64,000 nt of DNA from Orbicella franksi (lineage: Eukaryota), in the NCBI GenBank assembly GCA_964199315.1, contig OZ116708.1:3968001-4032000 (forward strand), written 5' to 3'. Shown here in pieces: positions 3,012 through 50,700 of this stretch. A model generated the notes under the pieces. It was not told the origin of the DNA. It ran no database searches and worked only from the letters and a program-made list of their open reading frames with translations. Numbering within the stretch: the stretch's first letter is position 1; each line of letters begins with the position of its first letter. The position numbers and the translations under genes were made by a program.

Positions 3012-3221
3012 ATGAATCACCCAAGTGACCTCTCTGCTCGCACAGAACGAGGCTTTACTAATAAAGAAAATGCAGAGGCAATTAAATTTGTTGCCGGAAA
3101 ACTGGCGCTCGTTGGCGACCAGCTGAACCAGTCATATGAAGAATCGCGTTGCAGCGAAGTCAGGTCATGTATAAAGCTGGAAAGTTGCTTAGACATTTTG
3201 CGTTTGGTGCTGAAGGCGTAA
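3012..3221 (+). CDS. BH3-only-like microprotein (copy B), 69 aa
   Basis: Residues 27-42 VAGKLALVGDQLNQSY fit the BH3 consensus h-s-x-x-L-x-x-h-G-D-x-h-N. Amphipathic C-terminal helix LESCLDILRLVLKA. Spliced 5' UTR, and a paralog with conserved N-terminus at 1-50. Confidence 0.8.
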   Translation: MNHPSDLSARTERGFTNKENAEAIKFVAGKLALVGDQLNQSYEESRCSEVRSCIKLESCLDILRLVLKA

Positions 3222-9210: not shown

Positions 9211-17942
<8,732 letters not shown>

Positions 17943-19228
17943 TTTTCGTGTGGCTGGGGCTCAACAGAAATGAAGAAGTACGACAATTTGAAAGTGTCAA
18001 GCTGCCATTTTGAATTTCAAAGATGGACACCAGATAGGAGGGACAGATGGGTATCGTTTACTTGAATATGTAGTGCCCAGTTTTCTCCGATGGTACTTAC
18101 ATGTACGGAAAACGGACGATAACTGCAGAAATTCTCGCGCACTAATTGGCTAATTTTCACTGTCAATAAGCGGACAGACACATGAATTTAGAATTTATGC
18201 GATGTGTCAACGAGCGAGAGCGGACAATTTGACAATTTGCTGTTAAGGACAAATTGATGTCAGTTGTCTTGCTATTGACAACGAATTTCGTCATAACATT
18301 GTCAACAGCTACTTTGACAGGACAGATGCATGAAAAGCTGACGTTAATTTGTTAAATGGCTGATGAATTATGCTCGATTATTTTTTCCCACTGGTTGTTA
18401 TGATTTCTTTTATTCAAGCACTACCCATTCGGGTGGACGAAGCAGTTTAGCCCTAACGTAAATGTACTGTGTGAAGGGGTACTTCCTCGTGGTCACGTGA
18501 CTAACCCATGTAAAGTTACGTCGTTCTCACCTCATTTAGGATAAGAATTAGTCATAGAGCACAAGGATTTTATTTGACACTACGATGTAAGCAATCGTGG
18601 GGTATCCTACTCAAGCTAATTTTAGGGGTCGATTTTTAAGCGACGCGTTAATTTCCATGCATCTTGCCAGGTGCCTTGATTGGGTGAGACGTTGGCAGGC
18701 TGTTCATATTTTAGAAATCACATCGAAGGGACGTAACAAGACATCGGAATACCGAGGAAACAGTGTATTTTGTACATTTTTACAACCTTTTGAGGAAGTT
18801 TATTTAGAAAAGAAAAACTCAATTGTCCAATTATGAAATCTAGTCTAGGACAATGGGAACCTTATGTCATCCCCATTTCGCGCACAAGTTCAATTATTTT
18901 TCAATCGCAGCAAAAATGATAAAGGGATTTAAGACGCAGTTTGTTCTTCCAGGATGAGGAATAATTGTGTGAAAGGCAGTCCTGAATTATTAAATAGCTA
19001 TTAAGCCATTGAGCCATTAAGTTCTGATTGAGGAGAAATTTTGAAAAAAATGTTAGTTTACGTCGAGACATGGTTTCCGATATCCACCATCAGAATACAT
19101 GCATGCAATGGGATACATTTCTGCTATCTTTTTTGATTAGTTAATGTTGTTTTTTTGCCTCTCCCTTTGACGATTAAAGTCAGCAACGCATCAGACTTAA
19201 TCTCACTCCAGGCTTATCCACAATGGCT

Positions 19229-26800: not shown

Positions 26801-28636
26801 TTCAAAGTCCAAGCTCCAAGCATGCAAGTAAAGAGGCATGGACAACAAGTGTTGATATAGAATGCAGCTGCAGCTAAGAAAAGATTCTCTCACACAACAG
26901 AGGCTACATTTTGGTACAAAATAGATAAGATGATCTTCCTCAAAAAGGTTATGAGAACCTTAACACTGACTGCTTTATCAACAGGGTTATTACATGGCTT
27001 ATTTTCTTGAAAGATGATAGAACTGCCCAATACAAACCAGCTGCTAAAACTATTTCCAAAAGGGGTCAGGAAACAAAGATTCTTTGCCACCTGAACACTT
27101 CCCTGCACTTCTCATTTCTATAAACCTTGGTACAACCCTGCTGATAAGGAGTACACACAACTGTAAGTGAGATCATTTGTATAAGTGACTCTGACTTAAC
27201 ACACAGTAGCCCTGTTTCTGCTATTCTGGGAACATCTTTAAGGCAATAATACAAGCTTCAAATGTGCCCAAGAATCGATCTGCTTTCAACTAAACAAACA
27301 GTATATAGTCAAACACAGCCTAGATTAATATGACTTCCTGTAGATAAACACTCGATTTCACACTCATTGAACGCAAGATATATTCCCTTTCTTTGGTAGT
27401 AGTAACTGAACGGCGCCAATAGATCGATAGCAGTTGTAGTAAAGCTTGATGACCATTCAGGGATTGCAACTTGAGCTATGTTGGTCTCTCCTTTTGGGCA
27501 GGAAAACTAGTATTGTCAACTTGCATTAGCAAATATCCTTGGAATATGATGGCATTATTTGAATGTATAGTACATCTCAGCCATGGCTGGAAAACACAAG
27601 TCCAAGGATAAGACAAGTGAACTTTACAAGCAATATGCAACAATGAACTCAACATGGACACGTGCTTCCCTTCTAGTGTAAATCCACTGCACTGTTCACA
27701 AACTAGTGTGGGATACAAAAAGACAGCTTTTTACACCAGTAGTAGTCCGATATTTCACACATCACGTTCTTTCGTCCTGACACAAATCATGTACTCTTTT
27801 CAACCTGTGATGATACCCCTAGCCAGCCAGGGTTGCTGCACTGACTAACCATGAGCAGATGATTTGGGAATGGTTACGTCCCTACACAATGTAGTCTCGT
27901 GTGCCCTGTGGATATTCTTCTTCGAACATTGTTTTTAAGAGGAAAGTAAGCTTTGAAGGAGCATAAATGCAGAAAACTAGCCTGTAAGCTTTGAAAGATT
28001 CAGCAAATATTGCAAACAAGGCTTTCAACATGAAAATCCACTTTCAGTGTTCACAGTTACTGTACATGAATCTGTTGCTGAACCTTCTAAATAATTAGAA
28101 AGCTAACACCAACATCTGCAACAACTAGAACAATACTTGCACCATTCACGTCATCACTTCTTTCATATCCGAAGGAAGTAAGCTTTGAGATAAGAATATG
28201 AAGATGTGCACATGTTTACCAAGAGACATGATTGTCTTGTATCCACATTGTGACTGCTCATGCTACAGATTTCAAAGCGGAATGACCACAACTTGAAGGG
28301 AAAAAAGGCCAGTAAAGGGGTAACTACGATGTTACCAATATTACACAAACATTATACAATAACACAATTTTTCTTTTTACACATTAAACATCAATTTGTT
28401 GATTTCAAAATGATTCTGTTATTAATTAGCTTACAGTGAAGCAAAGATGATACGAAAACATACAAAGTGCACTCAATAACACAAAAATGTAATGCTATGA
28501 GGAGTCAAATTCGACATATTTAATCAAAAAGGGGTGACAACCATCTAACAAGTAGTAAATGCATAGTCTTGGTCACAATGCAGATACAATGAAAGTGTGA
28601 AAACAGGCAAGTGCGCAAAAGGAGCTGACAATATTT

Positions 28637-31219
28637 TCACTTGTTTAAGGCCAGAAGAGTTAAGCCAGCGGCACAGATACTTCCCACTGTGAACAAACTT
28701 TTCCACATGGTTTGTGACTGCGAAGATTCTGAAAAGTGAGCAGTAAAGCCGTCCTGAAAAAAAAAAAAAAAAAACACAATAAATTCAATTTCCATGTAGA
28801 GCATCAATGACTTAGCACCATTCATATTTGCAGAAGGTGATAATTACAATCAACTTAAAGGGTGGATTGAAGAGAAAGCAAAAACATACTTCCCATTATA
28901 TTATAATCCACTTACTTCTCAATACACCACTATCAATATCTTAAAATTCAGCTTGATAGCGAGACCTAGAAGACACAAACAAAAGAAATGAATAAACATG
29001 GTCATTCAATTTCCTTTGTTTGTGTCCTCTAAGCCTCACTGCCAAGCTGAATTTTAATATATCAAAAACGGTCTATTTTATGTTGCATATCATTTTAAAA
29101 CATTGTAATAAAATAATTCCATACAGGATTATAAAAGGACACATCACATTTATGACAAATATGCTACAGAGTTGCTTAGGGTGTTTAACAAAATTCAGAG
29201 ACCCGAGGATACCACACTTTATGATTATTCATACCCTTCACAGGCAGCTGTACTAAGACTAATGTATTTGTCTGCAACCAAGAAATGAGTTGGTGCAGAT
29301 GAGTGACAGTGGCTTGACAAAAAGACAAATATTAGTCTTCTGTCTGAGGACATTCTTGCCAATAACATGTTCAGTTTTGGAGGAAGGAAGTTCATTTTCA
29401 ATTAGTTTAAAAGCGACTGCGGTTCAAGATAAATGCAATTAAGACATGTATCACAACATACGATATAGTTTAAAAATTGGCAATATGGGGCATTCCACTT
29501 TTATTCTGCACCCCTCTTTACATGGCAAACTCCAGCACAGTGCCTGTTGGAATATTGTTTTTTAAAGCAGCTGAAAAAATTTTGAAACTCTTGGAAGCAA
29601 ACTTCAAAGGTGCAGAAAATAAAAAAAGATAGGGTTTTGGAATCTGCCCTTCATTGCAGGGATGCAGATAAAAAATGGAGTGTTCCAATATATGGTTAAG
29701 CAGCATAGACACCAGTATCGTAAATTTTCCCAACTTTAAACAGGGCTACACAAAGAATTCCTTCACATAAAGTGTTGCTCTTTGGAAATTGAATTTTTTG
29801 TTTAGGATTTTCTCACTGTAAAGCACTTAGGACAGCAATGTATAAGCGCTGCATAAAAGTTTTTACTATTGTTACTGGTATTATTAAAGTTCTTTATTAT
29901 TGTCATTTTGTGATTTTACTAGAGAGAAACTTGCAACACTGAAATATAAAACAGACAAAACTCTCACTAAGTGGTACAAGACATTTAAATTTTTTTAACT
30001 TGAATTTACCGGAAGCCGTGTTCTGTCTTACTGGGTAGAGCGTATAATTTTTTAGTTTGAATTACGTAACTACGACCAGTACAAAATCCACCAAAGGAGG
30101 TACTTGAATGTTAGAGGGTGATCAAAAATGCATGAATGGAAATTAACTCCCCCGGGGCAATATACTAATACGAACATTTGTCAAACGGAAATACTTTTCA
30201 CGTTTTCTTCGCGCGAATTTTCTCTATTGAATCGAAGATCGAGAAAAAGCTGAAATTCTTCTGTTCAAATTTGTTAATGAAGTTATTCACTTGTCAACAG
30301 AAACAACCAGACTATTTATGCAGTGAAAGTTGAGGAAAACAGCAAGCAGAAGAGGTGCCCCGCTGATGCAAGAAATTTTCATTTTACATGTTTACATTAT
30401 CTATGGCCCCAGAATTTGTCTCAAGATTGAAAAATTCTTCTTGAATTTGCATCAAAATAACATACCTAGGTGTTTCGAGACAAAAACGTAAACGAAATGT
30501 CGACAAGATAAATGAATGTCTGACTCATAACTAATGTAAATACAGACTGAAATTTGCATTCAGTAAATTACTACAGCACGTACGTAAGCTCATGACAGCT
30601 GGTAGGCTAAAGAGAAAAATAACAAAAAATTTTTAAAATAATGTAAAATAAATAAAAAAACCACAGCGAATTTTTTCAAAAACTCAGGATTACAACTCAC
30701 CCATCCTCCATTTTCTCTGATCCACGTTAATAAGTTATCGGCTATAAATGAGGCAATCCATTCCACGATGTGTTGAGCCATTTCTGGTCGTTGTGTTTCC
30801 ACGAAATGATGAGCCACTACGCCTCCGAACGTGAACAACGCCACTATTCTGCCCCAGTTTGTTCCTGCTTGAAAAATCTCTTGCGCCACACCGACAAACG
30901 TAGGATAAGCTGTAACTGGTGTAATTCCTAACGTTGTGCACAATGATTCGAACAAATCAGGGTGTTCTGCCTCCATAAGAGTTGCCAGTTTTCGTAGAGT
31001 ACTCGCTGATGGGTTTGTTGGCGTCTGAGGAATAAGAAACTGTCGAGGTAAACCTTTAAGTCTGCTCTGTTCAAATTTGCTCCTTAGCCGGTAAGAAATA
31101 TAGTCAAGTGTGAGGGAAACTCCTTCGTCGATGATTTTCTTATCGTACCTTGACATTTCAGAGGTATTGAGGGTAGGAGAAAGGTCCTCGTTGTTCAGCG
31201 CAGCTGTCGCTCCGGCCAT
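28637..31219 (-). CDS. Pro-survival Bcl-2 family protein (Bcl-xL/Bcl-w type), 211 aa, two coding exons (30701-31219 and 28637-28753)
   Basis: BH4 LTLDYISYRL; LGITPVTAYPTF..VAQEIFQAGTNWGRIVALFTFGG (BH1); WIRENGGW|DGF with the intron at the conserved BH2 position (GTGAGT...TTTTCAG); C-terminal anchor WKSLFTVGSICAAGLTLLALNK. 5' UTR intron at about 31338-31482. Confidence 0.93.
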
Positions 31220-31559
31220 ATTGAGTGATCGTAGTTAGAAAAGTGAAAGTGTTCGCACGCAAATTCCTTGTTTCGGCCCTGCAGTTTGTTTTTCTTCTTT
31301 AAACAAGGATACAATTTAAGGAAATGGTATCTTTGTCCTAAAAAGAGAAAAAGACATTAAAACCAAGCACCGTTGTCGGTGGCGTACTTCCTTGCTGACG
31401 CATCAACGTAACCGCACTAGTAGTGAGCTTAGTGAAAACACAACCGAGTGCTCCCGTTAAAAGAAAAAATATATATACTCACAGAAGTTAACCAATGTTC
31501 AAAACACTTGGCATAGTACTTGAAATAGCAATTTAAAAAGCAAAAGCAAAGGAGAAGTA

Positions 31560-32560
31560 GAGAGTAGAAGCAAGCCTTGGCGCGGAAGCACTAAAATAAC
31601 TACCACCATCAAACGAGCCTTGCAGTGGCGAAGAAATGTCGCTAAAGAAAAATTTCTTTGGCACGCCGCTCTCTTACGTGATTGGTCAGCTTGACAAGTT
31701 AGTGCTTTCTGATTGGTTCCGGTTGATGACCTGTCAACACACTTCTTTCCGTTGAATTTCATCAAGAGATGAGGTCACTGAGATATATGGAACAGAAAAT
31801 TAAACATTGACGGGAAAATTTTATTTGTTCCACTCAAGATATCTGTCAGTTATTACAAAAGTAGCATTCTGCCTCCCAAAAAGACTCATTGGAACAAAGT
31901 CTGACCCGAAAATCGTACGAATTTTCAACTACGGTTTGCAGAGATCTTGCGAAACGAAAGTAGAACAAAAAGTACATATGTAAGCGAAAAGTAAACATAC
32001 ACAATGTTTTCGCCGAATCTTTCTCGACGCCTACCATGAATAATTTTGTTTGCTCTTAGCTCTATGTCACCCGTAAGGCTAAAGAATCACCAAGCATTAA
32101 AAGAAACGCTTTGAAATGTATAATAAAGATTGTAAAATCGAGAAATTTAGGTTGAATTGTCAAGATCATCAATATGTTGGAAAATTATGCAAATTAACCT
32201 CAAAGTGCATTTTCATGAATTATTAATGTTAAAACATGGTCGAAAACCAAAAGAAAGCGTGGTTTTGGTGTGCTCTTGTTTTGAAACTAAAACCGTAAGC
32301 TTGTGCACGTGGACAACGGAATACACATCAAAAGAACAACTTTGATTGGTCAAGAAACAATGGCAATAACACGCGCGCGAACTATTGTCCTTGAGACAAT
32401 AGCAGGACTGACAACGTCTTAGACGCGAGCCAATCAAAAAATACAAAAATATTGCAACGTATTATTTGGCAGAATATCAAAAATAGGTGAATATATTTAT
32501 ACGCAGTTAAATATTTTTTTCGCGGGAACTTTTTTTTGGCGACGTTCAGTGAGTGAAGAG
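31560..32560. promoter_or_regulatory. Divergent promoter region between the Bcl-xL-like gene and BH3-only gene C
   Basis: ATTGG/CCAAT boxes at 31681, 31712, 32345 and 32430; E2F-like TTGGCGCGGAA (31577-31587) and TTTCGCGGGAA (32518-32528). Confidence 0.55.
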
Positions 32561-33175
32561 GCAAAAGACATTCGTTGCGAGAAGACCGACTGCCGAACAT
32601 TCGGTCTTGCCATGAATTTTGCCCTTCCTTGAGGAAGGTTAACAGTACTTGAAGTAATTACCAGCGAAGGAGAACTTTCTGCGACCGTCTTTCCTTGTCA
32701 AACAAGTTAGCTTCGAAGGCGAAACTTCAAGCAACAAGTTGTTGACTATTAAAGAAGCGAGCCGCTTGAAGATCATTTTATTTCGCCCTGGTAAGTGGCA
32801 TATTGAAAGCTTTCCACGAACAGGGCGTTAAATTACGTAGCTAACTGTCTTCCACAGCTTATCCAAGATGCTTTTATGGGCCATCTGCTTTCAAAGTTTT
32901 TATTTTGAAAGCTCGGATAGGAAATGGGTTCGCGAGCGGCTCTTTCTTTGCCGAGAATATAAATATATAAACAAGGGTAGTTGTTGTGCTTCACAGGGGT
33001 GTGAGACATAAAAGAAGCCGATAATTTCAATTTGCTTTTCTAAATGGTCATAACAGAGCAAAGTATGACTAATGGGCTGTCCTCTTTAGCAAAATAACTT
33101 CGAGTTTAACCTGTCCTCAACTCATGCCCATCTGTTTATTATATAGACCGCTTGGAGAGGATATACGTAACTGGT

Positions 33176-33430
33176 ATGGACCGCGACAAGCCAAGATCAG
33201 CCGGCAGCAAGCCACAAATAAATCAACTGGCTTGTCCTTCATGTGAATTGAGTCAAGAAAGTAAAGAATTATGCCGAGAAATTGGGAAGGTGTTGGCCAG
33301 AATTGGAGATAGAATAAACGCTTTGCAACTGACAAGGAATGGACACAATCTTCACATCAACTGTCGCGATGGCGAAAGGATAAACGATGATGATACGAGA
33401 CCCAGGACGGGGGTGAATAAACTTCCGTAA
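33176..33430 (+). CDS. BH3-only-like protein (gene C), 84 aa
   Basis: ATG at 33176 follows an acceptor at 33146; non-coding exon 1 ends CCTG|GTAAGT at 32790/32791. Residues 36-50 IGKVLARIGDRINAL are a canonical, BAK-like BH3. No BH1/BH2 or transmembrane segment follows. Confidence 0.8.
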   Translation: MDRDKPRSAGSKPQINQLACPSCELSQESKELCREIGKVLARIGDRINALQLTRNGHNLHINCRDGERINDDDTRPRTGVNKLP

Positions 33431-35349
33431 ATACCGGAAGGTTTTTATCTACCAATTACTTTTAAAAATTCTATTTCTACGCCAGAAGAATTGTACATAT
33501 TATATGCAGATTTTGCTGTAATCTAGATGTAACGTACTTCATTTTGGAAATGCGTATATGTATAATAGTTTTTAAGACTCGAGCTGTGAGCTTTGTAATT
33601 TGCATCGCTGATTTTACGAAAACAACAGTTCCTGAGACGAATTGTTTTAAAAGGAAAACCCAATCTTCAAAACGCATGTAAATAGTTTTCACAATAGCAG
33701 TGACATACAAATAAAATCAGCTGATGAAGAGCAATATTTTGGTACTTAGTGTCCATAGCAACTTATTGTTCTCCCGGCGAGGACATTTGACACAATGGCG
33801 CTAAAATAGCGAAACAACAGTGACTTTGCACAATGGTTCTTTATGCTTTGAGGAATCAATGATACCATTGTTCGCTGCAAACTAATATATTCCGATTGCA
33901 CGGGCTGATCAGTGGATTTTTCTGCAAAAGCGGCATCTGGAATTTTTGCAGGGTTTTGTCAACAACTAACTTTGATACGTCGAGACGAATGAAAGAGAAA
34001 AGCCCTTGAGGCCAAGGTTTATTAAGTCGGACAGAATTAGTTGCTTTTTTGGGTGGTCGACCTGGGGTGTTAACCTTCCCGCTATACTGTGACCGATTTA
34101 ATAACAAAACGCAACAATATTTTGACTGTATACATCAATGAAGCTTTGTTCTCCCTTCGCTCGACCAGCCAAGTCGCACTGATTGAGAAATCTATCAAAA
34201 GGGATGGGTTCTTGCCTGTTCCGTACTATAAACATTGCCGCTCTTTTTTCCTAGGGTCAGCAATTTGTCTTCTGATATCATGACTTAGGTTTGCAGGGTT
34301 TCCTTGGCTTTTCTGACCCGTCAAGGTTTCAATCAAGTCATTTGTTACGCTCGATTTTCCAGAGTTAAATTTCTTCTCCCAAGCCGGTGTTTTAAACCTT
34401 TGCCTTTTCCTGTGATTGCATAATCATTTTACGAAAAGGTTGTCTGGCTTCGAATTCTGCGCGCAGAGAAGATAGTTCGTGATTTCAAAGATCGTTCATG
34501 GTGAGTCGAATATCACAGAAACTTCAAGAGTGTTTCACATCACGCTTTCTACACGAATTTCTTTTTCTGACAAACTATACCCTCGCAGTGCCGGTAATAT
34601 AAACAGATAACATTACTGTTGTTTTCAAAGTTTTGCTTCTGTGAAATTAAATCGATATTTCCTTTGACGAGTGGGCAGTAAACATTAATGAGAGATAAGT
34701 CTAAAAAATTGTGCTGGAAGGATCGAGATTCTAATGATGATAAAATTTCACCGCAAAAACAACAGACTGACTTATACCACAATGTCTGTCTGTTTATAAA
34801 ATCACGTGCAAAACAAATACACAATATCAAAGTTTGCAAAACAAACTCGACGCCTGCATAACATGCGCAGTAACCGACAATATAAGAGGGGAATTTTAAG
34901 CAATACAGTAAAGTAAAATCGCGCTATCTCAGACAAGGAGAATTAGAAATAGGCATTAGTAAATGACAGAAAGAGTATATCCAAAATAATTTCAATTCGA
35001 GATAGCGGGGAATGAGAGATACCCGGTTTCAACTGTTTTAGCGAGGAGTCTGAGAACGAGATATTACATCATTGCCGGGGACAAAAGCTTACTCCGTTTT
35101 CAGTGTTTGTCTGCTTGGCTCTGTGTATCACAGGAAAAAACTCGATTTTGAATACTCGATCTTGGGAATTTTTCGAAGTAAAGGATGTCAAAATTTGTTC
35201 CGTCCAGTTTAGTTCTCCCTCGATCTCAGACTGCTGAAGTGGATGAATTTAAGTGGGTTTCTGTCACTTCGTTACACAGTAGAACCACCGGTTGTCTCGA
35301 TCGAACTCCGCACTTATCTCGATCTCAAATCATTTTTTCCTTTTTGTAT

Positions 35350-35850: not shown

Positions 35851-38749
35851 GCCGTTTTTTGTTTGTTTGTTTTTTTTTTTTAAATAATAATGATAAATAA
35901 AGAATTTTAATTCCAAAAATGAAAAACACCTGCTTTACTTTAAGGCTTAGGACACCCAGTGGGGAGAAAATTGATACGTCATGTACAACACCATGTCAGG
36001 GTCACACTCTGACCAGATGCATGCAGAATGGGTAATCATTTGCCGCTTACCAAGGGAATGTCTCTCTCTCAACACCAACACACAACTAAGGGGTACACGG
36101 AACTAAAATGACTAAATTTGCGACGATAGCTTTGGAATGAATCTAAGATCTATACGTTTAATCTTTTTAAAACGTTCTTTGCCGTGAACGATTCCCTTTT
36201 TAGTCGCTCAAAAGACATTTCTGTCATTGAATTTTCTTGCCGGCAAATATAACTTTCCCCCCACCCCCTCCCCCCACTTCCTCTCACCACCAGGACCCCA
36301 TCCTACACCACCCATTGCGTTCAAAACACTAATCTCAAATCTCCCGTAGTTAATTTTCTTCTTGTGATCTCGAAAACATCTAAGAGAAAATAGACGGTCA
36401 GACTGGTTCCAGATTTAAGGGAAACTCTTATATTCCTTGAGGAAGATCGTTTCAGCTTGGAAATGACGAATACAGGTAGACTGCGCAGGGATTAAGCCGG
36501 AAAATTTCAAATTCACGTAAATTTCAAAGACTTACTGATTGAATTACCCTGGACATGATCATGCACATTGCTCGAGATCGTTGGTGATCACGTCCTTAGA
36601 AATTTCAAAAGGGGCTACTGGCGTTTCAAACTGGAAGATCTCATAAAAATTTACCTCGAATCATATCAAAACATTTTTAATATTGCTGGAAATAATATAT
36701 TGGTTTACTGATAAAACTCTTTAGAAGTTGCGTCTAACCAGCTTCCGCCTCCCTTGTAGAGGCTAGGGGACACTTGTCACAACAGGACGAAGGCGACTGC
36801 AAAATGTCGGTTAATTTAATTTTGTGGAATTATGTTTTCTTTCCCACTTGGAGAAGATTAGTCAGCACTCGAAATATGAGTCGAAAGTTCATCTAAAAAG
36901 CTGCCACCTCAATTTTGCAGAGGGCAAAAAACGCTTGGACAAGAATGAACAAGAAGCAAGATTATCCATTCATTCTCTTGAAGTTGAAGCATTCATTGTT
37001 TGACTGACCTGAAGCAAATTTAGGAATTTAACAATTAAACCAGGTGAAAAGTAGCGGACCTCGGGGTTATTACACTGAGCCTTACGAACTTCATCGAGAT
37101 TAATTTCACAGTAAACACAAAATTATATCAGTTTCAGTTTGGCGAACACTCTTCAACGCTTTTGTGGCTGACATTGAATGACATACTCCCAGATAATATT
37201 GAATAGGTCGCTATTTTTAGCCTCCTGAATTACTCATTTCCCCGAAAACAGAAGAAAGTTTGACTGGAACATCAGATCATCACGTTTAGTAGCAACATTC
37301 CCCGAAATGAAGTAGGAAGCTTTCAGTTACTGCTTCGACTCTCTACTTTCAACGCACAAATCAGTTTGTATATAATTGGTACAGTAAATTAAATGAATTA
37401 AAAATAATCTTAATGAATGAAAGTACATATGAATGATCTCGTGAGAATAGTGTTGTACCTAGTTTTACAAAGAGATTTTAAATGAAATACCTGCAAATTT
37501 CTTTTCCACATTCAACTATTAGTGAATGAACGCTCGCAACTTCACTGGGTTCAGTCCTGCGATGGAGGGAATAAAACGACACTTCAAGAAAGCTCCTCCA
37601 AGTTCTAACACTTGCGTCAAATGAATACCCTTGTCGGCTTTGCCTTCGCTTTTTAACCATGATGATTACCAGGTAATTTATAAGACAAACACTGCTATTG
37701 GATATTTTGAGTTATTATATAATGATGGGTGGTGAATATCACGAGTGCCGTAAAAAATACGGTGAACTGATCCCCTGTCCCTCTTAAGTTCCTGTTTTTC
37801 TAGCTATATGGGCCACGATTGTTACATTGTGGTTGAACACGTGTGTTTCCGAGTTGTTATTTTTCGTGCCCCAGTATTTTTTTTAAGTAACTTTCAAACA
37901 AAGCGGGAGAGCATTTTAATGACAGGCCGCTAACAGCGTACTGTATGAGGCATAACGGGACCTTCAACGGTTATCCGTCATTTCTGATCAAGTAGCAATT
38001 TCTCGTCAGTATTAGGCGATAAAAAAGCGTTGGGGAGTTTCATACTACGTGATCTGGGGTGATAACAAACGCAATTGTGCTGACAAGTGCAGACAACTTG
38101 TGTTTGTAGTCACATGTGTTTGAGAAGTTGTAATTCGCCTGTAAGGATTTTCCCGTCGCAATATTCAACCTTAAATCGGCCAGATTGCTGAAACCGGGTC
38201 AAACATGATCGAGATTGTGGAAATACATCAGTGAATCGACAGAGTCACGTGCTAATGGGTGCATGTTGGGTAATTCGATCAAAATCTTGCGACGTGCAAA
38301 CAGTATATAGTTGAACATGGAGGAAAATTTTGGTGAGATTACCAGGGCTGCATGTAATGGGTGATAATCTTTTAATGATACATTGCAAGCATGAATCATG
38401 TTTTGGTGATCTGATCCACACATCACACTTCACTCGTCTTAAATATCAATTTAAAATATTTGCCAACAGGAATCGTGACCTTGGAACTTAGCTTAAATCA
38501 CCGTGTTTAGTGCATGTCTCAGGTGTGCTGAGCGACACAGTTTTTTTGTATCCAGGGAAACAAAAGCGCTTAATGTGTGGGAATTTTTTTAAACAACATT
38601 GGCTTCTGCGCATAAAATACCCTTAATGTACCCTGCCCCCCCCCCCCTGGCCGCGCCCCAGGAGACAAGAGGCAGCCTGGACGGAAAAGGAAAGTTGGAG
38701 GATCAAAGACCACACGGAAAAGGACGGGTGGGGTGGGTGGGGAAGGGGG

Positions 38750-44777: not shown

Positions 44778-47700
44778 CTACACGAAGTAGTTTTTCCTTA
44801 AAACGGACATGTATTGCTTGGACGAAGCGGTCAGCGGACCGTACGAGCCGCTGTCCCCATCACTTAATAGACTCGGCTTCAGATCGAGGTCTGACGNNNN
44901 NNNNNNNNNNNNNNNNNNNNNNNNNNNNNNNNNNNNNNNNNNNNNNNNNNNNNNNNNNNNNNNNNNNNNNNNNNNNNNNNNNNNNNNNNNNNNNNNNNNN
45001 NNNNNNNNNNNNNNNNNNNNNNNNNNNNNNNNNNNNNNNNATTTGGAGTCACTTGTTTTACAATTTGTCTCTCTTTTTTTCAATTCTTCAGAAAGACATA
45101 GGAAAAAAACAGAACGGAGAGTTTTACTTTTACAGAATCACAACGACAGAAACAACTTACCGCTTTCTAAATGACGCTTTATACTCTTGTTCAGTTCATT
45201 TTCTACAGCCTTCATTAACTGCCCGTCTCCCTGCACGAAAATATACAGTATAACATTACTTTAAAACATTTCGTTTGCGGTTTAATTGAGGACCAATTCA
45301 TGGAAGTGCGAAATCCGAAAACATATTGTATGGATGTGCATCTAAATTCTCCATAGAAACTTCGAGAGAAATGTAAGGCAGTCAGTAAAGGGAATCGATA
45401 ATTCGAGCACGAAAATCAGAACGGGTTTGGGCCACAAAGAAGTTACAGTTGTCAATGATTGATTGTGACATTTTTCGTGAAATCTGCCTTTTTTTTTTTT
45501 CAAATCTCTCGAACAATCACACAGCAAATAACCGCGTATGGCAAACATTCTTTGACACTACTTCTTTAATATCCCCGTTTCCCGGCATTTGATTGGTCAA
45601 ATATAAAAGGAGAGTTCAACACCAACAATGTTGAGCTTATTTCAATTTATATAATTGTCGCGAACTTTACCTTGGAGTGCATTCGATCTGGACTTCTTTA
45701 ACATCCCCGTTTCCCAGCATTTGATTGGTCAAATATAAAACGGAGAGTTCAAAACCAACAATGCTGAGCTTATTTCATTTCATATAATTGTCACGAACTT
45801 TACCTTGGAGTACATTCGATCTGGACTTGTTGCAGGTGAACCATTTAATAGTCCAGCAAGCGCATCTGAATGAGGAGACGTGTCACGCTGCAAGCCGTCG
45901 AAATTTCTCCGTGACCTCTCAAAACTGTGAACGAACAACATATTACATCAAATTACTACTTCGCTTGATAGATTATTCACTTACTAGCAATCATAAAGCT
46001 TGTTTTACAAGCTGCAAACCAATTTTTTTTTACTGTCAATCCTTTTCGTCACGACAAAAGCAATTTGAGTCACGTCAAATCAATATTAGTCATGACATAG
46101 ATTCCGAGTCACGCCAGAACCACTCTCGACTTCCAACAAAATCAATTTGCGCGATCGGATATCATTGTCCGAAAAAATCTCAAGTCACGGCGAAATCAAT
46201 TTAAATAAACCACTCGCTTTCTCAGCTATCGTCGCTGTTATTTTAAAACGTGCACTTAGAATCGAAAAGTGCTGCCGTCTTTTGCTTTGAATTCTTCTTA
46301 GTTCCTTGCGGAACGTATAACGTCCGACACCAACGCTTTCCATCTACATGTACACCAGTTTTGGACTGCTTTCTTGGCAGTGGCTTTTAATTAAAGCTGC
46401 ATTGCAAAACAAACACACAAAACAGATGCTTTTCTATGGAGTTTTCACGCCACTTACTTGAGCAACGCTTGGGACTCCGCCATCTTCTCGTTTGCTTTGT
46501 ACAAACGATTGGCCAGCTTATCTTTAGACTTCAACTCGCTTTCGTACAAATCCTGAAAACGAAACAAAAATAACAATTTCAGTTTTTAAAATTCCAAAAA
46601 ATTTTAATAAACCGAAAAGGAAGTTTGCTTGGAATCATTGTTATTAACAGTACCTTATATCGCTTGGCTTCAGCATCGAAGGTTTCTCTCTGGGTTTGGC
46701 TCTCATGGTAGCCGGCGCGCATCTTAGCCACATCGGCCTAACGAACAAACAAAAGGGAATTTTTAGGTCTTGGGATCACAAAAGACTTAAAAACAAAAGA
46801 TTCAATAGATAATACAGAATACCCACACCAAAACATAATTGGCAACTAAAAAAATTTCCAACCTGCCAACGATTATAATTGTAACTTTTGAGTATAAAAA
46901 AGGTAATAACCGTGGTTGAACACTTAGCGGCGCATCGTAAACCCCAAATTGTGACTCTGCTTATGAATTTCGTCACATTTTACCGCTCTTGGAACTGGTG
47001 ACACAATTTCCCCCCCCCCCCCGCCTCCCCACTGATTATGCGCTTTAGTGACATGTTTTCCCGCCCTAGCTACTGATGACGCGTTTCTTGCTGATCCCAT
47101 TGGTGACACGTTTTGCCTCCTTCGCTCCTGGTTCAACTTTTTCCCATCCCTGGCCACTCATTATGCGTTTACCGCTCTTGGAACTGGTGACACAATTCCC
47201 CCCCCCCCTCCCCACTGATTATGCGCTTTAGTGACATGTTTTCCCGCCCTAGCCACTGATGACGCGCGTCTTGCTGATCCCATTGGTGACACGTTTTGCC
47301 TCCTTCGCTCCTGGTTCAACTTTTTGCCATCCCTGGCCACTCATTATGCGTTCGCCGCCTTCACCACCGATTGTGCGTTTTCAGGCCCTTGCCACGGAAA
47401 ACGCGATTTTCCACCCTTCTCATTAGCTACAGGTTTTCCCACCTTCCTCACAAATTACACGTTTACCCGCCTTAGCCACCGGTTATATGTTTTCCCGCCA
47501 CTAATACCGAAGATGTATTGTAATGAAGAACTATGGACAACAACTGAGCAGGAAAGGATCAACATTCCGATAAGAAGGCGAAAGTAGGGTTGGATTGGGC
47601 ACACCCTCAGGAAAACTAACTGCTATGTCACCAAGCAGGCACTGAGATGGAACCCACAGGGGAAGAGGAGCCGAGGCCGTCCCAGAAACAGCTGGAGGAG

Positions 47701-50700
47701 GACGGTAGATGACGAGGCGAGCAAAGCAGGCTACACCTGGTGGCAGCTTGAAAGGATAGCCCAAAACAGACCAAGATGGCGAGCAATGGTTTCCGTGGAC
47801 CTGTGCTCCACTGGGAGCGAAAGGGTTTAATGAATACCGTTTTCGCCTTTGGCATCCGTTACATGTTTTCCGCTTTAGCCAGCGGTTACACGTTTTCCCG
47901 TTTACCACTGGATATACGTTGTTTTCTCGCCTTTGGCATTCTCGCCTTTGCTGCGTAGTTTGACAGGAGAAATACTGCTCACCTTGAGGTCTGCTATAGT
48001 CATCTCCAATTCTTTTCTTGTCTTTGATTCGTTTGCTTCGCGCATTTTGTCTAATTTCTCTCGGGCAACGGCCTGCGGAGAATTGCAATAATGAATTTAA
48101 TATATAGATACACTACGACACAGGTGATTTTCAAAAGTACAAAGACTTCTGTGCATCACAGGAAGTCCAATAGTAACAGTGGGATTTTGCAGAACAGTAC
48201 TCGACGCAAGACAAGAATCCTTAACGAGCTCAGGACGGAAATAGAAACTCATGTTACAAGAAAGAATCTCTGTTTACGAAAACGTGTACCTTCATTCAAG
48301 AACACCAATAGAAAATTCTTTGCCATGTCTCACCTGCTCTTCCAAATGAGCATTTACTTCCTCTAGTTTACGATTTAGTTCAAACCGAGACTGTCGAAGA
48401 AGAAAGAACGGTGGTCATTAAACAACAACATAGCACAACCGACTGCTAACTTACTGTTATAGGTTTTGGATTCCTCTAAATTTCGTCGTTGTTCTAAGAA
48501 ACACCTTCATGCTAAGCGAAATCATGCCTACAAACCTTAGCTTCGAGTTCTTGCTTGTAAGCTTCCAGCTGTCCTTTCTCCACAAAATTATTTTCGTAAA
48601 AGGCCTGAAACAGTAGAGTGAAACGATTAGGGGGCACTCTTTATCAGTGAAGACACTTACATATGACTACATAGAATTGGTCTGTTCCAGGTTTCCAAGC
48701 TGCGGAAAAACGAGCAAATCGTCCTGGAACCTGAAACTATGTTAAGCTGGGATAGCTCAACATAGTAATCTTCTTTACCGATTGTACTCAAGCCTCCCCG
48801 CTCCCTCCCACCACTCTTTACAAATACCTGACGGTCTCGCTAACTCAGACCAGACCTATTTTCGTCGGCACGCGGGTGGCAGGAAAGGGTTTAGAGCTGA
48901 GCCCTTCCCCAAGATACGCTACTGCAGACAACTATGAGGGTCTCCTGAATACTCTAGCGCGTCTCGAGACAACACTTGTCCTCAGAGAGAAGTGTCGTTG
49001 CCGCGGTGACAAACCAAATAACGGCTATAAAGGCATCGACGAACAGAGTAGCTAAATGACTAGCGACCTTGGACAAATGCTCTTCTACTTGACAAGAAAA
49101 CAAAAGGCGATGTTTGCAATGATCATGATCGCCATTTACCTTGAGTCTTCCGACTTCTTCCTCTAGTTGTCTGTTGGTCTGTTCAAGACGTTCTTGGTCG
49201 AAGAGAAGGCGCTAAAATCAACAAATCGACAAATTGTTTAAACATAAAGATCTTTGCTGGTTTTCAGACTGGATATGTATAAGTGTAAGCGTCAGTGGAG
49301 CACGATTTGGAAAAGTAAAACAAAATTCTACCAAAGGTGTAATTACTGGAGAACAGATCTAGCATGCGTGGTATACAGAACTGGAACAAACAGTAGCGTG
49401 ACAAGCAGTCTTGGAAAGTACTGAAAGCTCTTTAAAATCAACGCGGTGAAGTACTCGTTACCGGTTCTCTTAGTTCCTTGTCTCCTTCCAGGAAACAGCA
49501 AACAAGATACTTAAAACTAGTCTTAGTGGTAAGAGATTGTCGAATTCAAAGCATAACGAATTCACAAGTTGCGTCAGATAGCCAACTTCTAAGAGCATTT
49601 CACGCTCCACAGCGAATGAAGAGATTAAATACTTACCTTTTCGTGTTGTATCGCTGCTGATAGCTCTGTAGAAAGCAAATTAAAGCAAAATAAAGGATCA
49701 AAGACATAACCTCAATTAAACTTAAAACTCTGACAAACAAATTGTTCTTAAGGTCCCACTAAAGGAGGACGAAGATGAGCAAACGGTATCCATGTCATAA
49801 CAGGCACATTATTTTGGCCACGTATGTAACATTACTTTTAAATTGAAGGAAACCTGAAAATAGTTGTTTACTAAGATGGAAAAACAGCAAGGCGATAATA
49901 ATAAACCATAAAGGAACAAGGATGGTTAAGGATGGAGAAGATTAACATGGATTACAAACGACAAACCTGAAAAATTTAGATTAAACTTTTCAAAATGAGC
50001 AAAACGTGACGTAGCTCCTTTCAGTAAGGCGGCAAAAGCTAATAGAATCACCCTGTTGCTGTTGTTTGGATGAAAGCTCCACACGTGAACGATTTTCTGA
50101 TTCTTGGTGAAGCCGCTCGCTCAAGTTATCCAACTGGTAAAAAGAAAAAAACTAGATTAGAACCGGAAACAAGAGTATTGTTTTCATAATTACAAAATCA
50201 CCTTCAAATTCATGGAAACCTCCAAACTAAGACAGAAAAACAGGAAAGAGGCGAAATAAACTAAAAATAGGAATATGGCCATTTAGGCCAAACCAATCAA
50301 ATCCTTACCAACCTTGAGATAACAAAAAAACAACAACAACAACAAAAACAAACTAAAAAAGCGAACCTGTCTTCGCAAGGAAGTAATGTGTGACTCCATG
50401 GCAGAACGCTCCTTGTCAAACTCAACTCGCAGAGAAGGAATCCGACTCTCTGAGGCTTCGTATTCCTTCAAAATATTCAAAAATGGCAAGCAAGTTACTA
50501 CTACTATAGTAAAAAAATGTATATCTTGTTATCCTCGGAAGTGAAAATTTTTACAATTTCCAAAATCTGTTTTTCCTATTTTTCTTTGGAATAGAAAAAC
50601 AACGTTAATCATATAAAAGAATGAAGAAAAGTCTCCATCGTGTAATATTGTCCCGATGTAACGAAATTCTCGCAACGAAGACTAAAAGAAATATATGGCA

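Follow-up and report, generated by a model that had tools for sequence, protein, structure and literature searches.

The window, a 64,000-nucleotide stretch of contig OZ116708.1 of Orbicella franksi, contains a Bcl-xL-like Bcl-2 gene on the minus strand (gene A) and a BH3-only gene on the plus strand (gene C) that are arranged head to head. As the preliminary description had proposed, both genes are real and, judged by RNA reads, transcribed and spliced, and the BH3 motif is canonical. The minus-strand open reading frame from 31219 belongs to the Pfam family Bcl-2 (PF00452) with an E value of 2.8e-30 and 105.2 bits against a curated cut-off of 31.4. All 60 of its best solved relatives in the PDB are Bcl-xL, Bcl-2, or Hydra Bcl-2-4—with Hydra Bcl-2-4 and Bcl-xL at the top—and in a tree of the Bcl-2 family of this genome, gene A stands apart from the Bak/Bax-like members L009 and L012. 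By sequence, gene A thus resembles the pro-survival proteins more than it does Bax, Bak, or Bok, and this homology suggests a pro-survival role. In Acropora, four of five Bcl-2-like proteins protected HeLa cells (PMC4715348).

The transcript of gene A begins with a non-coding exon 1 (31483..31618, minus strand), which is placed by read starts and ends and by contig pieces. Its main start cluster lies at 31600-31618, with read starts or ends at 31600, 31606, 31614, and 31617-8; about 5% of the depth of RNA run X23, together with contigs of runs X1 and X8, extends upstream of it, to 31925-32060. Intron 1 (about 31338-31482, minus strand) lies within the 5' UTR, and its joint 31336/31482 reads CT..AC on the plus strand, meaning GT..AG on the minus strand. 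Its removal in 266 X23 reads, next to one spliced X8 contig, sets the start of the 5' exon at 31483, exactly as predicted beforehand, and the same intron structure is seen in Stylophora (transcript L004 mapped on L003). Exon 2 (30701..31337, minus strand) comprises a 5' UTR part (31220-31337) and coding sequence that opens with the ATG at 31219 and reaches the exon end at 30701. These 173 residues contain a BH4-like region, BH3, BH1 (NWGR, residues 121-124), and BH2 (GGW, residues 171-173). Intron 2 (28754..30700, minus strand) follows directly after the BH2 tryptophan; reads that are cut at 30700 resume with the sequence of 28753. The coding part of the last exon (28637..28753, minus strand) encodes a linker and a C-terminal membrane anchor, ...LFTVGSICAAGLTLLALNK, with the hydrophobic run judged by eye, and ends on ...MWKSLFTVGSICAAGLTLLALNK, followed by the stop codon. 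In tblastn searches with full-length proteins, this exon is 95% identical in Stylophora and 71% identical in Exaiptasia. The 3' UTR extends below 28200. X23 depth is 170-185 per mate orientation in exon 2, falls to 2-9 in intron 2, and reaches 120-160 in the last exon. A fragment of a repeat or a transposon also sits in intron 2, at about 28975-29080, and many loose ends fall at 28975-29078. In addition, a minor alternative upstream exon (37491..37600, upper end approximate, minus strand) is spliced to exon 2: 23 X23 reads pass from 31339 into letters matching 37493-37522 with one mismatch, and the exon ends on a CAG|GT donor on the minus strand. Gene C lies antisense within the first intron of the transcripts that use this exon.

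Gene C is far smaller. Its open reading frame at 33176-33430 encodes 84 residues with the BH3 motif IGKVLARIGDRIN, the core of which (I36 G37 K V L40 A R I43 G44 D45 R I47 N48, at 33281-33319) agrees with the consensus used, h1-small-x-x-h2(L)-x-x-h3-G/A/S-D-x-h4-polar. No Pfam family matches the protein even with E values of up to 1 allowed, and neither another BH motif nor a Bcl-2 fold was found in it. Its 21 homologues come from stony corals, sea anemones, and further distant samples. Across 14 coral and anemone sequences, only G37, L40, A41, G44, D45, and N48 are invariant besides the initiator methionine, and these residues represent the BH3 signature. Stony corals additionally keep four cysteines (C20, C23, C33, and C63) and an invariant C-terminal GVNKLP. 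Judged by a dN/dS of 0.14-0.34, the frame is under purifying selection. Another BH3-like small open reading frame is located at 3012-3221 of the window; it has no Bcl-2 neighbor.

The non-coding exon 1 of gene C (32560..32790, plus strand) has a start that is placed only within about 32530-32594. The earliest contig start is that of a spliced X8 contig at 32594, a few reads lie upstream of 32600, and the stranded X21 depth is 9 in 32600-32799 versus 1.25 in 32400-32599. The intron within the 5' UTR (32791..33146, plus strand) has a GT..AG joint that is covered by nine X21 reads, six X23 reads, and contigs of X1 and X8. Because it is spliced out in all four runs, exon 1 ends at 32790—the position that had been predicted—and transcription of gene C, which had been named as a point to be checked, is established. 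Exon 2 (33147..33730, plus strand) contains the coding sequence and a polyadenylation signal AATAAA at 33710-33715, and RNA depth stops before 33800. In the stranded run X21, read strand agrees with both genes. A conserved upstream open reading frame of six codons (32612-32632) lies in exon 1 and uses three different stop codons among species. Taken together, splicing, polyadenylation, transcription from the right strand, homologues, and a constrained dN/dS mark gene C as a real coding gene.

With starts at 31600-31618 (minus) and about 32530-32594 (plus), the genes begin 0.91-0.99 kb apart, in accordance with the roughly 0.9 kb anticipated between the divergent first exons. They are therefore a borderline case of the head-to-head pairs with starts <1 kb apart that are termed bidirectional promoter pairs. 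The two CCAAT boxes and the E2F-like site anticipated on each side were located as well. The core promoter of the Bcl-2 gene (31622..31716, minus strand), delineated by alignment and conserved blocks, consists of GCAGTGGCG (31622-31630) and two CCAAT boxes. One of these, TGATTGG at 31679-31685 and thus 63-85 bp upstream of the start, is conserved in all six aligned species, and the second (31710-31716) in stony corals only. The E2F-like site of this side lies inside exon 1, at about 31575-31588. The promoter module of gene C (32186..32536, plus strand) is richer, and its elements follow one another in an order shared by the six aligned species: first an octamer-like TTATGCAAAT (32186-32195), which stands out best in corals; then ATGAATTATT (32215-32224); an E-box CACGTG (32306-32311), 37-50 bp from an inverted CCAAT box (32343-32349); CCAATCA (32430-32436), 85-88 bp from the inverted box in seven species; a TATA-like TATTTATACGCAG (32494-32506); and an E2F-like TTTCGCGGGAAC (32518-32529) within a site that spans 32514-32529. 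Three of the four CCAAT boxes and the E2F-like site of gene C are conserved from corals to sea anemones, far above chance. Only the gene C side has an E-box, a TATA-like element, and an E2F-like site of deep conservation, and a p53-type response element was looked for and not found. The assignments to transcription factors are consensus matches, and the factors that would bind these motifs are accordingly putative.

Conservation in the intergenic region forms two peaks, at 31520-31720 and 32220-32520, which are separated by a weakly conserved spacer (31820..32120, no strand). In the spacer, the share of invariant alignment columns is only 14-33% for four stony corals and 4-6% once all six species are compared; in the flanking peaks, the values are 52-75% and up to 34%, respectively. 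Two peaks with a trough between them indicate two separate, adjacent promoters and not a single shared core.

Transcript levels lead in the same direction. The depth ratio of gene C to the Bcl-2 gene is about 0.02 in X23 and about 0.02-0.06 in X1 and X8, where it derives from contig depths—a poor measure of expression. In X21, with only 183 placed reads, it is inverted to at least 7, with a depth of 33 for gene C versus at most 4.5 for the Bcl-2 gene. Hence, over four runs of unspecified tissue and treatment, the ratio varies more than 100-fold, and the two transcripts are not at a fixed ratio. Shared core elements and co-expression, as expected of one common promoter, were not found for the pair. 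The proposal that one divergent promoter region couples the dosage of both genes is thus not supported.

The arrangement is not confined to this assembly. It recurs in seven sampled hexacoral species, the window included, with ATG-to-ATG distances of about 1.5-2.0 kb: 1957 in the window, 1960 in Oculina, 1909 in an ENA coral, 1931 in Stylophora, 1817 in Exaiptasia, 1885 in Nematostella, and 1492 in L021. By this distribution, the linkage was already present, at the latest, when stony corals and sea anemones last shared an ancestor. In Stylophora, Exaiptasia, or L021, two further genes, one CytB561_N-like and one large and coiled-coil, hold their positions as well, and with such wider synteny in some species, the persistence of the pair alone is no proof of selection on linkage. 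Nematostella retains the pair and its spacing, although its genes up to 8-10 kb to the left and right of the pair have no match to the neighbors in the window. A second Bcl-xL-like gene of this genome (L007) has its own divergent BH3-only gene, a pair that recurs in two other coral assemblies (L019 and L020). These paired loci are the only two among about 12 Bcl-2 family loci in the genome. The two BH3-only families align over 17 residues only (probability 59%), and the family tree does not resolve the paired Bcl-2 genes as each other's closest relatives; these sequences do not demonstrate that the cassette arose only once. No earlier description of the pairing of a Bcl-2 gene with a BH3-only gene was found in the literature.

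A model of the complex, run three times, places the BH3 helix of gene C in the groove of gene A with a score of 0.87; of three controls, the best scores 0.53. The runs share at least 86% of their contacts, and the pLDDT of the partner is at least 55. Herein, L40 of gene C contacts V111, I115, A127, L128, and F131 of gene A, and D45 contacts N121, G123, and R124. The mark applied is reached by 51 of 78 solved complexes and by 2 of 108 mismatched pairs; since many BH3-in-groove complexes are already solved, a pass may mirror likeness only, and the model does not discriminate which Bcl-2 paralogue is the true partner of gene C. Read in this way, it suggests that gene C may bind the canonical groove of gene A.

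The closest known counterpart is Hydra vulgaris Hy-Bcl-2-4 with HyBH3-only-2 (Lasi et al. 2010; Banjara et al. 2020, PMC7489894), where a cnidarian pro-survival protein binds a short BH3-only protein in its canonical groove. Hydra Bcl-2-4 binds the HyBH3-only-2 BH3 (AIGACLRAIGDDIQ) with a KD of 149 nM (PMC7489894), meaning that binding is measured in Hydra and modelled for gene A and gene C. The BH3 cores are alike (AIGACLRAIGDDIQ versus EIGKVLARIGDRIN in gene C), with no detectable similarity beyond them, and a report on the arrangement of the Hydra genes was not found in the literature. Gene C also resembles the cnidarian candidates hypothesized for Acropora and Nematostella by Suraweera et al. 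2022 (PMC8998228, Fig. 5) in being short and disordered with an intron-less coding sequence, a comparison made by description only; that article is silent on a position beside a Bcl-2 gene. In fold, NWGR, GGW, the intron after the BH2 tryptophan, and the C-terminal anchor, gene A matches vertebrate BCL2L1 (Bcl-xL), and gene C shares its BH3 consensus with vertebrate Puma, Noxa, Bim, and Hrk. Inducible BH3-only genes of vertebrates are under E2F- or Myc-type transcriptional control; we know of none that lies head to head with a pro-survival Bcl-2 gene. Bidirectional gene pairs are likewise divergent, with starts <1 kb apart, CCAAT boxes on both sides, and strongly conserved adjacency, but the present pair differs from them by a distance at the upper edge of the definition, two discrete modules, and uncoupled transcript levels.

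These observations are best accommodated by an ancient cis-linked pair of a probable guardian (gene A) and a probable trigger (gene C) of the mitochondrial death pathway that are driven by two separate promoters, a reading to which we assign a probability of roughly 0.58. The pro-survival activity of gene A is that suggested by homology, and the pro-death activity of gene C is putative. The amphipathic helix of gene C (I36, L40, I43, G44, D45, and I47) would enter the hydrophobic groove of gene A, with D45 pairing with R124 of NWGR, and the guardian would thereby be neutralized and Bax/Bak-type effectors freed. Both genes are transcribed divergently from core promoters about 0.95 kb apart. Gene A has a simple CCAAT-box (NF-Y type) promoter and is abundantly expressed, and gene C would be kept low by default in two layers—the conserved E-box/CCAAT/TATA-like/E2F-like module and the six-codon upstream open reading frame—a layout as expected for an inducible death trigger, comparable to vertebrate BH3-only genes that respond to E2F or Myc. 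The short stretch between the two genes is crowded with regulatory DNA under constraint, which is probably why the linkage has persisted. Neither conservation nor the four RNA runs gave a sign of a shared promoter or of joint dosing.

The likening of the pair to a toxin-antitoxin module, in which one bidirectional promoter locks the dosage of killer and antidote and the linkage itself is selected, appears improbable. It can draw on the head-to-head orientation with starts <1 kb apart, on CCAAT boxes on both sides, on a linkage kept in seven species and found twice in this genome, on direct binding as supported by the model, and on the three of four runs in which the killer transcript is a small and fairly similar fraction (0.02-0.06) of that of the antidote. 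As in bacterial type II modules, a killer adjoins its direct protein inhibitor. However, two separate conserved modules with unlike elements flank a weakly conserved spacer, the ratio is inverted in X21, only two of about 12 Bcl-2 family loci are paired, and the BH3-like frame at 3012-3221 has no Bcl-2 neighbor. Moreover, bacterial modules are marked by co-transcription, autoregulated joint expression, a labile antidote, and post-segregational killing, whereas the coral genes produce separate divergent transcripts from their own promoters, and in the usual view, the "toxin" (gene C) titrates the "antidote" (gene A), which is the reverse of the bacterial case. Co-inheritance, also invoked in the preliminary description, is no evidence for an addiction mechanism, since any two genes 2 kb apart are co-inherited.

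A frozen accident is easier to entertain, although still unlikely. Here, both genes act in the same pathway, short head-to-head intergenic regions are seldom broken, and the neighbor is not the preferred binding partner; synteny of the flanking genes in several species, the independent regulation of both genes, the lack of discrimination among paralogues in the complex test, and the fact that the two pairs cannot be traced with confidence to one origin are all in keeping with this. It is countered by Nematostella, which keeps pair and spacing amid unmatched neighbors, and by the independent divergent BH3-only partner of the second Bcl-xL-like gene, for which chance is estimated at roughly 1 in 100 from a frequency of about 0.05 strict motifs in 64 kb of shuffled sequence. 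Gene C could also be a BH3-containing microprotein with a role other than that of a death trigger, for example in non-apoptotic Bcl-2 functions (autophagy, calcium, or mitochondrial dynamics) or by way of its coral-specific cysteines and C-terminal tail. BH3 motifs are also found in proteins outside the apoptosis pathway, and the conserved cysteines and GVNKLP are needless for a plain BH3 ligand; just one of four Hydra BH3-only candidates is pro-apoptotic (PMC7489894). We consider such a role improbable too, as nothing but the BH3 core is conserved between corals and anemones, the modelled contacts are canonical, and a dangerous inducible product agrees with the low basal level, with the E2F-like site, and with the upstream open reading frame.

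A more far-reaching and rather doubtful extension of the guardian-and-trigger reading is that the divergent cassette belongs, as one unit, to the ancestral equipment for cell death in animals. It would have existed before Hexacorallia radiated and perhaps before cnidarians and bilaterians diverged, would have been copied whole to give the two pairs, and would be kept for its shared chromatin domain: with the trigger inside the chromatin domain of the guardian, trigger-competent cells would already express the antidote. If this were true, few known death-gene switches would be as old as the E-box/NF-Y/E2F-like array, with its several hundred million years of conservation, and synteny would offer a general route to BH3-only genes in early-branching animals, where they have been elusive.

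The set of BH3-only proteins in corals has been described as important yet hard to find, because little of their sequence is conserved (Moya et al. 2016, PMC4715348). One BH3-only family across Hexacorallia now has transcript, evolutionary, and modelling support. A second was found purely by inspecting the region upstream of another Bcl-2 gene, so that looking beside Bcl-2 genes may be a practical rule for such searches. The toxin-antitoxin analogy gives way to two independent, adjacent switches, and the order and spacing of non-coding elements kept between corals and sea anemones are rare and of interest in themselves. The same cassette is present in the genetically tractable Nematostella and Exaiptasia; its promoter array and upstream open reading frame represent concrete, mutable handles on the cnidarian death decision, which bears on bleaching, symbiosis, and regeneration.

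A divergent arrangement of a Bcl-2 gene and a BH3-only gene was found in all seven loci compared, that is, in the window, which originates from contig C11 of the stony-coral genome G000, and in six further loci; hence, it is not peculiar to one assembly. The distance from ATG to ATG is 1957 bp in the window, 1960 bp in Oculina patagonica (L001), 1909 bp in the ENA coral (L002), 1931 bp in Stylophora pistillata (L003), 1817 bp in Exaiptasia diaphana (L005; BH3 IGKMLAMIGDEVN), 1885 bp in Nematostella vectensis (L006; IGRMLALIGDQLN, which is without annotation in the L006 record), and 1492 bp in a more distant hexacoral-like assembly (L021). The synteny of the flanking genes, as judged by tblastx bit scores, is partial: Stylophora and L021 retain a CytB561_N-like gene (16880-17950 in the window) in its position, and Exaiptasia and L021 likewise retain a large coiled-coil gene (44780-48390 in the window, minus strand). 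The 8-10 kb on either side of the Nematostella pair contain no match to the neighbours in the window, yet the pair is still present. An ankyrin-cGAS-like gene, located at 19-22 kb between the CytB561_N-like gene and the Bcl-2 gene, has no counterpart at this place in the other loci compared. Comparison of the loci indicates that the pair was already adjacent in the last common ancestor shared by stony corals and sea anemones, several hundred million years ago, if not earlier.

The minus-strand member, gene A, is a Bcl-xL-like gene. The Pfam Bcl-2 domain PF00452 was detected in the minus-strand ORF starting at 31219 (105 bits, E 2.8e-30), and its best matches among solved structures are Hydra Bcl-2-4 (6wgz) and numerous Bcl-xL/Bcl-2 entries, with no Bax, Bak, or Bok among them. 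NWGR forms residues 121-124, and the first coding exon terminates at GGW. The coding part of the last exon (28637-28753, minus strand) contains a linker and the hydrophobic tail and shows 95% identity to the annotated Stylophora protein. RNA evidence covers 28200-34199 and consists of two raw poly(A) runs (X21 and X23) and two RNA contig sets (X1 and X8). The intron in the 5' UTR (31338-31482, minus strand) is spliced out in 266 X23 reads and one X8 contig, and the read starts and ends bunch at 31600-31618. Exon 1 thus reaches from 31483 to about 31618, in close agreement with the 31483-31650 of the preliminary description, and the 5' UTR of the Bcl-2 transcript from Stylophora (L004) is divided into exons and intron in the same way. 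Extension further upstream to 31925-32060 amounts to about 5% of the X23 depth and is also seen in X1 and X8 contigs, which suggests minor upstream starts. In another minor form, 23 X23 reads, as opposed to 266 for the main joint, connect exon 2 to 37493-37522. The corresponding exon is placed at 37491-37600 (minus strand) and adjoins a good minus-strand donor; it may stem from an alternative promoter or from transcription that runs through from the large coiled-coil gene on the minus strand (44.8-48.4 kb). Gene C, the partner gene, sits antisense inside the first intron of this form. Intron 2 of gene A harbors a repeat or transposon fragment (28975-29080) that in every run shows high depth and loose ends at either side, as well as strand-switch joints, the RNA there being transcribed from elsewhere in the genome. 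In the 3' UTR, one base at 28483 is missing in all RNA runs (140 of 151 X23 reads), and at 28528 the RNA in all runs has C in place of the A of the assembly; these mismatches are either assembly errors or fixed differences of the sequenced individual.

Gene C lies on the plus strand and encodes 84 residues (CDS 33176-33430), including IGKVLARIGDRIN, which agrees with the BH3 consensus at all defining positions. It is transcribed and spliced, as had been proposed from the sequence, with its GT..AG intron (32791-33146, plus strand) removed in all four RNA runs. The earliest contig start is at 32594 (X8), with a few reads upstream of 32600, and the depth ends before 33800, shortly past the AATAAA signal (33710-33715). 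First mates of the stranded run X21 map to the minus strand in gene C and to the plus strand in the Bcl-2 gene, as expected for plus-strand gene C RNA and minus-strand Bcl-2 RNA. From the start positions of both genes, the main starts are 0.91-0.99 kb apart, which bears out the previously estimated divergence of roughly 0.9 kb.

A Pfam search of the gene C protein returned no family. Homologues were found by a word-based search (10, with 65-87% identity, one of them a hypothetical protein of Oculina patagonica) and by a profile search (21, among them Porites lobata and 87-residue proteins matching the ORF of Exaiptasia). When 1.84 billion representatives were searched exhaustively with a profile, some distant small proteins were added, but no relatives beyond small proteins of the same kind. 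That gene C might be a non-coding promoter-upstream transcript was rejected in view of a pairwise dN/dS of 0.14-0.34 among four stony corals (dS up to 0.6-1.4) and by a reading frame kept in more than 20 species. Gene C is a real protein gene. Besides the initiator Met, only G37, L40, A41, G44, D45, and N48 are invariant from corals to anemones, and these six residues make up the BH3 signature. Copies from stony corals additionally retain four cysteines as well as DDDTRPRTGVNKLP at the C-terminus, namely CPSC (33233-33244), cysteines at 33272-33274 and 33362-33364, and an invariant GVNKLP (33413-33430). The sea anemone copies lack CPSC, both further cysteines, and the GVNKLP tail. Speculatively, these features may bind metal, act as a redox switch, or form a docking motif. 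Another strict BH3 pattern, VAGKLALVGDQLN, is located in a small 69-residue ORF at 3012-3221 (plus strand), with no Bcl-2 gene nearby.

The complex model of gene C with gene A scored 0.87 in all three runs, and the highest-scoring of three controls reached 0.53; since many BH3-in-groove complexes have been solved, this score describes the likeness to such a complex rather than binding by this copy, and it is silent on whether the neighbour is the preferred partner of gene C. Among solved complexes, 51 of 78 attained that mark, as did 2 of 108 mismatched pairs. Between runs, at least 86% of contacts agree, with a partner pLDDT of at least 55. Herein, L40 is modelled in contact with V111, I115, A127, L128, and F131 of gene A, and D45 with N121, G123, and R124 of its NWGR; these predicted contacts are the canonical ones.

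The preliminary description had interpreted the pair as resembling a toxin-antitoxin system, with one divergent promoter region that couples the dosage of both genes. The alignment of the intergenic regions of six species instead exhibits two separate conservation peaks. At 31520-31720, 59-75% of columns are invariant in the four stony corals and up to 25% in all six species; at 32220-32520, these values are 52-70% and up to 34%. The trough between them (31820-32120) has only 14-33% and 4-6%, respectively, which speaks against one shared promoter. Read depths point in the same direction. In X23, the Bcl-2 exon depth is about 350 (both mates) and that of gene C about 7, a C/A ratio of 0.02, whereas in the stranded X21, a run of few reads, the Bcl-2 exon depth is at most 4.5 and that of gene C 28-33, a ratio of at least 7; X1 and X8 give about 0.02-0.06, contig depth being a poor measure. 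Despite the small sample of four runs with unstated tissue, a ratio that varies by more than 100-fold is at odds with locked dosage. Coupled dosage was dropped on the basis of both the two-module conservation profile and the uncoupled depths, and the toxin-antitoxin analogy with it, while nearly every observed detail of the preliminary description held.

These details include CCAAT boxes and E2F-like sites on each side, which are partly conserved; as consensus matches, all promoter motifs are putative sites. On the Bcl-2 side, most of the six species retain a GCAGTGGCG element and a CCAAT box that lies 63-85 bp upstream of the start (31679-31685), and conservation of the other CCAAT box and of the E2F-like site within exon 1 is confined to stony corals. 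The gene C side carries an array of ATGAATTATT, CACGTG, an inverted CCAAT, CCAATCA, TATTTATACGCAG, and TTTCGCGGGAAC, whose order is identical in all six aligned species. The inverted CCAAT is separated from the following CCAAT by 85-88 bp in seven species, and the TATA-like element of the array lies 20-23 bp ahead of the E2F-like site, which has a GCGGGAA core in corals and Nematostella and reads TTTCGCGC in Exaiptasia. All three deeply conserved CCAAT boxes show the extended ACCAATCA form. The window and Oculina differ by 0.6 synonymous substitutions per site, yet the gene C array is almost identical. Upstream of the E-box, an octamer-like TTATGCAAAT (32186-32195) and an AT-rich ATGAATTATTAATG element (32215-32228), the latter retained from coral to anemone, may be POU- or homeodomain-type sites. 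The region 31000-33800 contains one p53 half-site and no full response element.

Exon 1 of gene C further contains a six-codon upstream ORF (32612-32632, plus strand) that is conserved in four stony corals. Its peptide and stop codon are MNFALP and TGA in the window, MNFALP and TAA in Oculina, MKFTLP and TAG in the ENA coral, and MNFTPP and TGA in Stylophora. A six-codon upstream ORF is also found at the aligned position in Nematostella. An inverted repeat, CCTTCC-TTGA-GGAAGG, overlaps the upstream ORF at 32612-32632, which is probably a translational brake.

A second pair exists in the same genome. For each of the other 12 Bcl-2-domain matches in G000, the surrounding 10 kb were scanned with BH3 patterns, both strict and loose, and with two profiles; one further divergent partner was found, at locus L007 (G000:C1, about 26.11 Mb). 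In shuffled sequence, about 0.05 occurrences of the strict pattern arise per 64 kb. The pair (L007:3334-3603, minus strand, and L007:4727-5206, plus strand; G000:C1 about 26.1087-26.1106 Mb) comprises a 90-residue BH3-only ORF with VGQILQAMGDELN, 1.1 kb upstream of and opposite another Bcl-xL-like gene, and is conserved in a further two coral assemblies (L019 and L020). The remaining BH3 matches are the Bcl-2 genes' own BH3 motifs. With L007 as the only one of 12 loci having a divergent partner, a general pairing of Bcl-2 and BH3-only genes was rejected. The profile-profile match between the two BH3-only families spans a 17-residue core only (probability 59%), and the Bcl-2 gene tree of this genome does not resolve the two paired genes as sisters, the window gene grouping weakly with the partnerless L010. 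The cassette may have been copied as a unit or may have arisen twice.

The BH3-only repertoire of corals was described as awaiting characterisation (Moya et al. 2016, PMC4715348). Candidates with intron-less coding regions were hypothesised for Acropora and Nematostella (Suraweera et al. 2022, PMC8998228); gene arrangement is unmentioned there. Binding of Hydra Hy-Bcl-2-4 to the BH3 of HyBH3-only-2, which resembles that of gene C, was measured (Banjara et al. 2020, PMC7489894). The searched literature, with subscription journals mostly outside it, holds no description of a Bcl-2/BH3-only head-to-head pair. Judged by the compared loci, the arrangement is much older and more general than the preliminary description could know. 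That the intervening 1 kb is densely packed with regulatory elements would be a sufficient, neutral-ish reason for the genes to stay linked, and a shared chromatin domain is a more interesting possibility. An abundantly expressed guardian, gene A, would adjoin a tightly controlled, inducible trigger, gene C, each with its own conserved promoter and gene C with an additional translational brake; the data agree with such a guardian and inducible trigger on separate switches.
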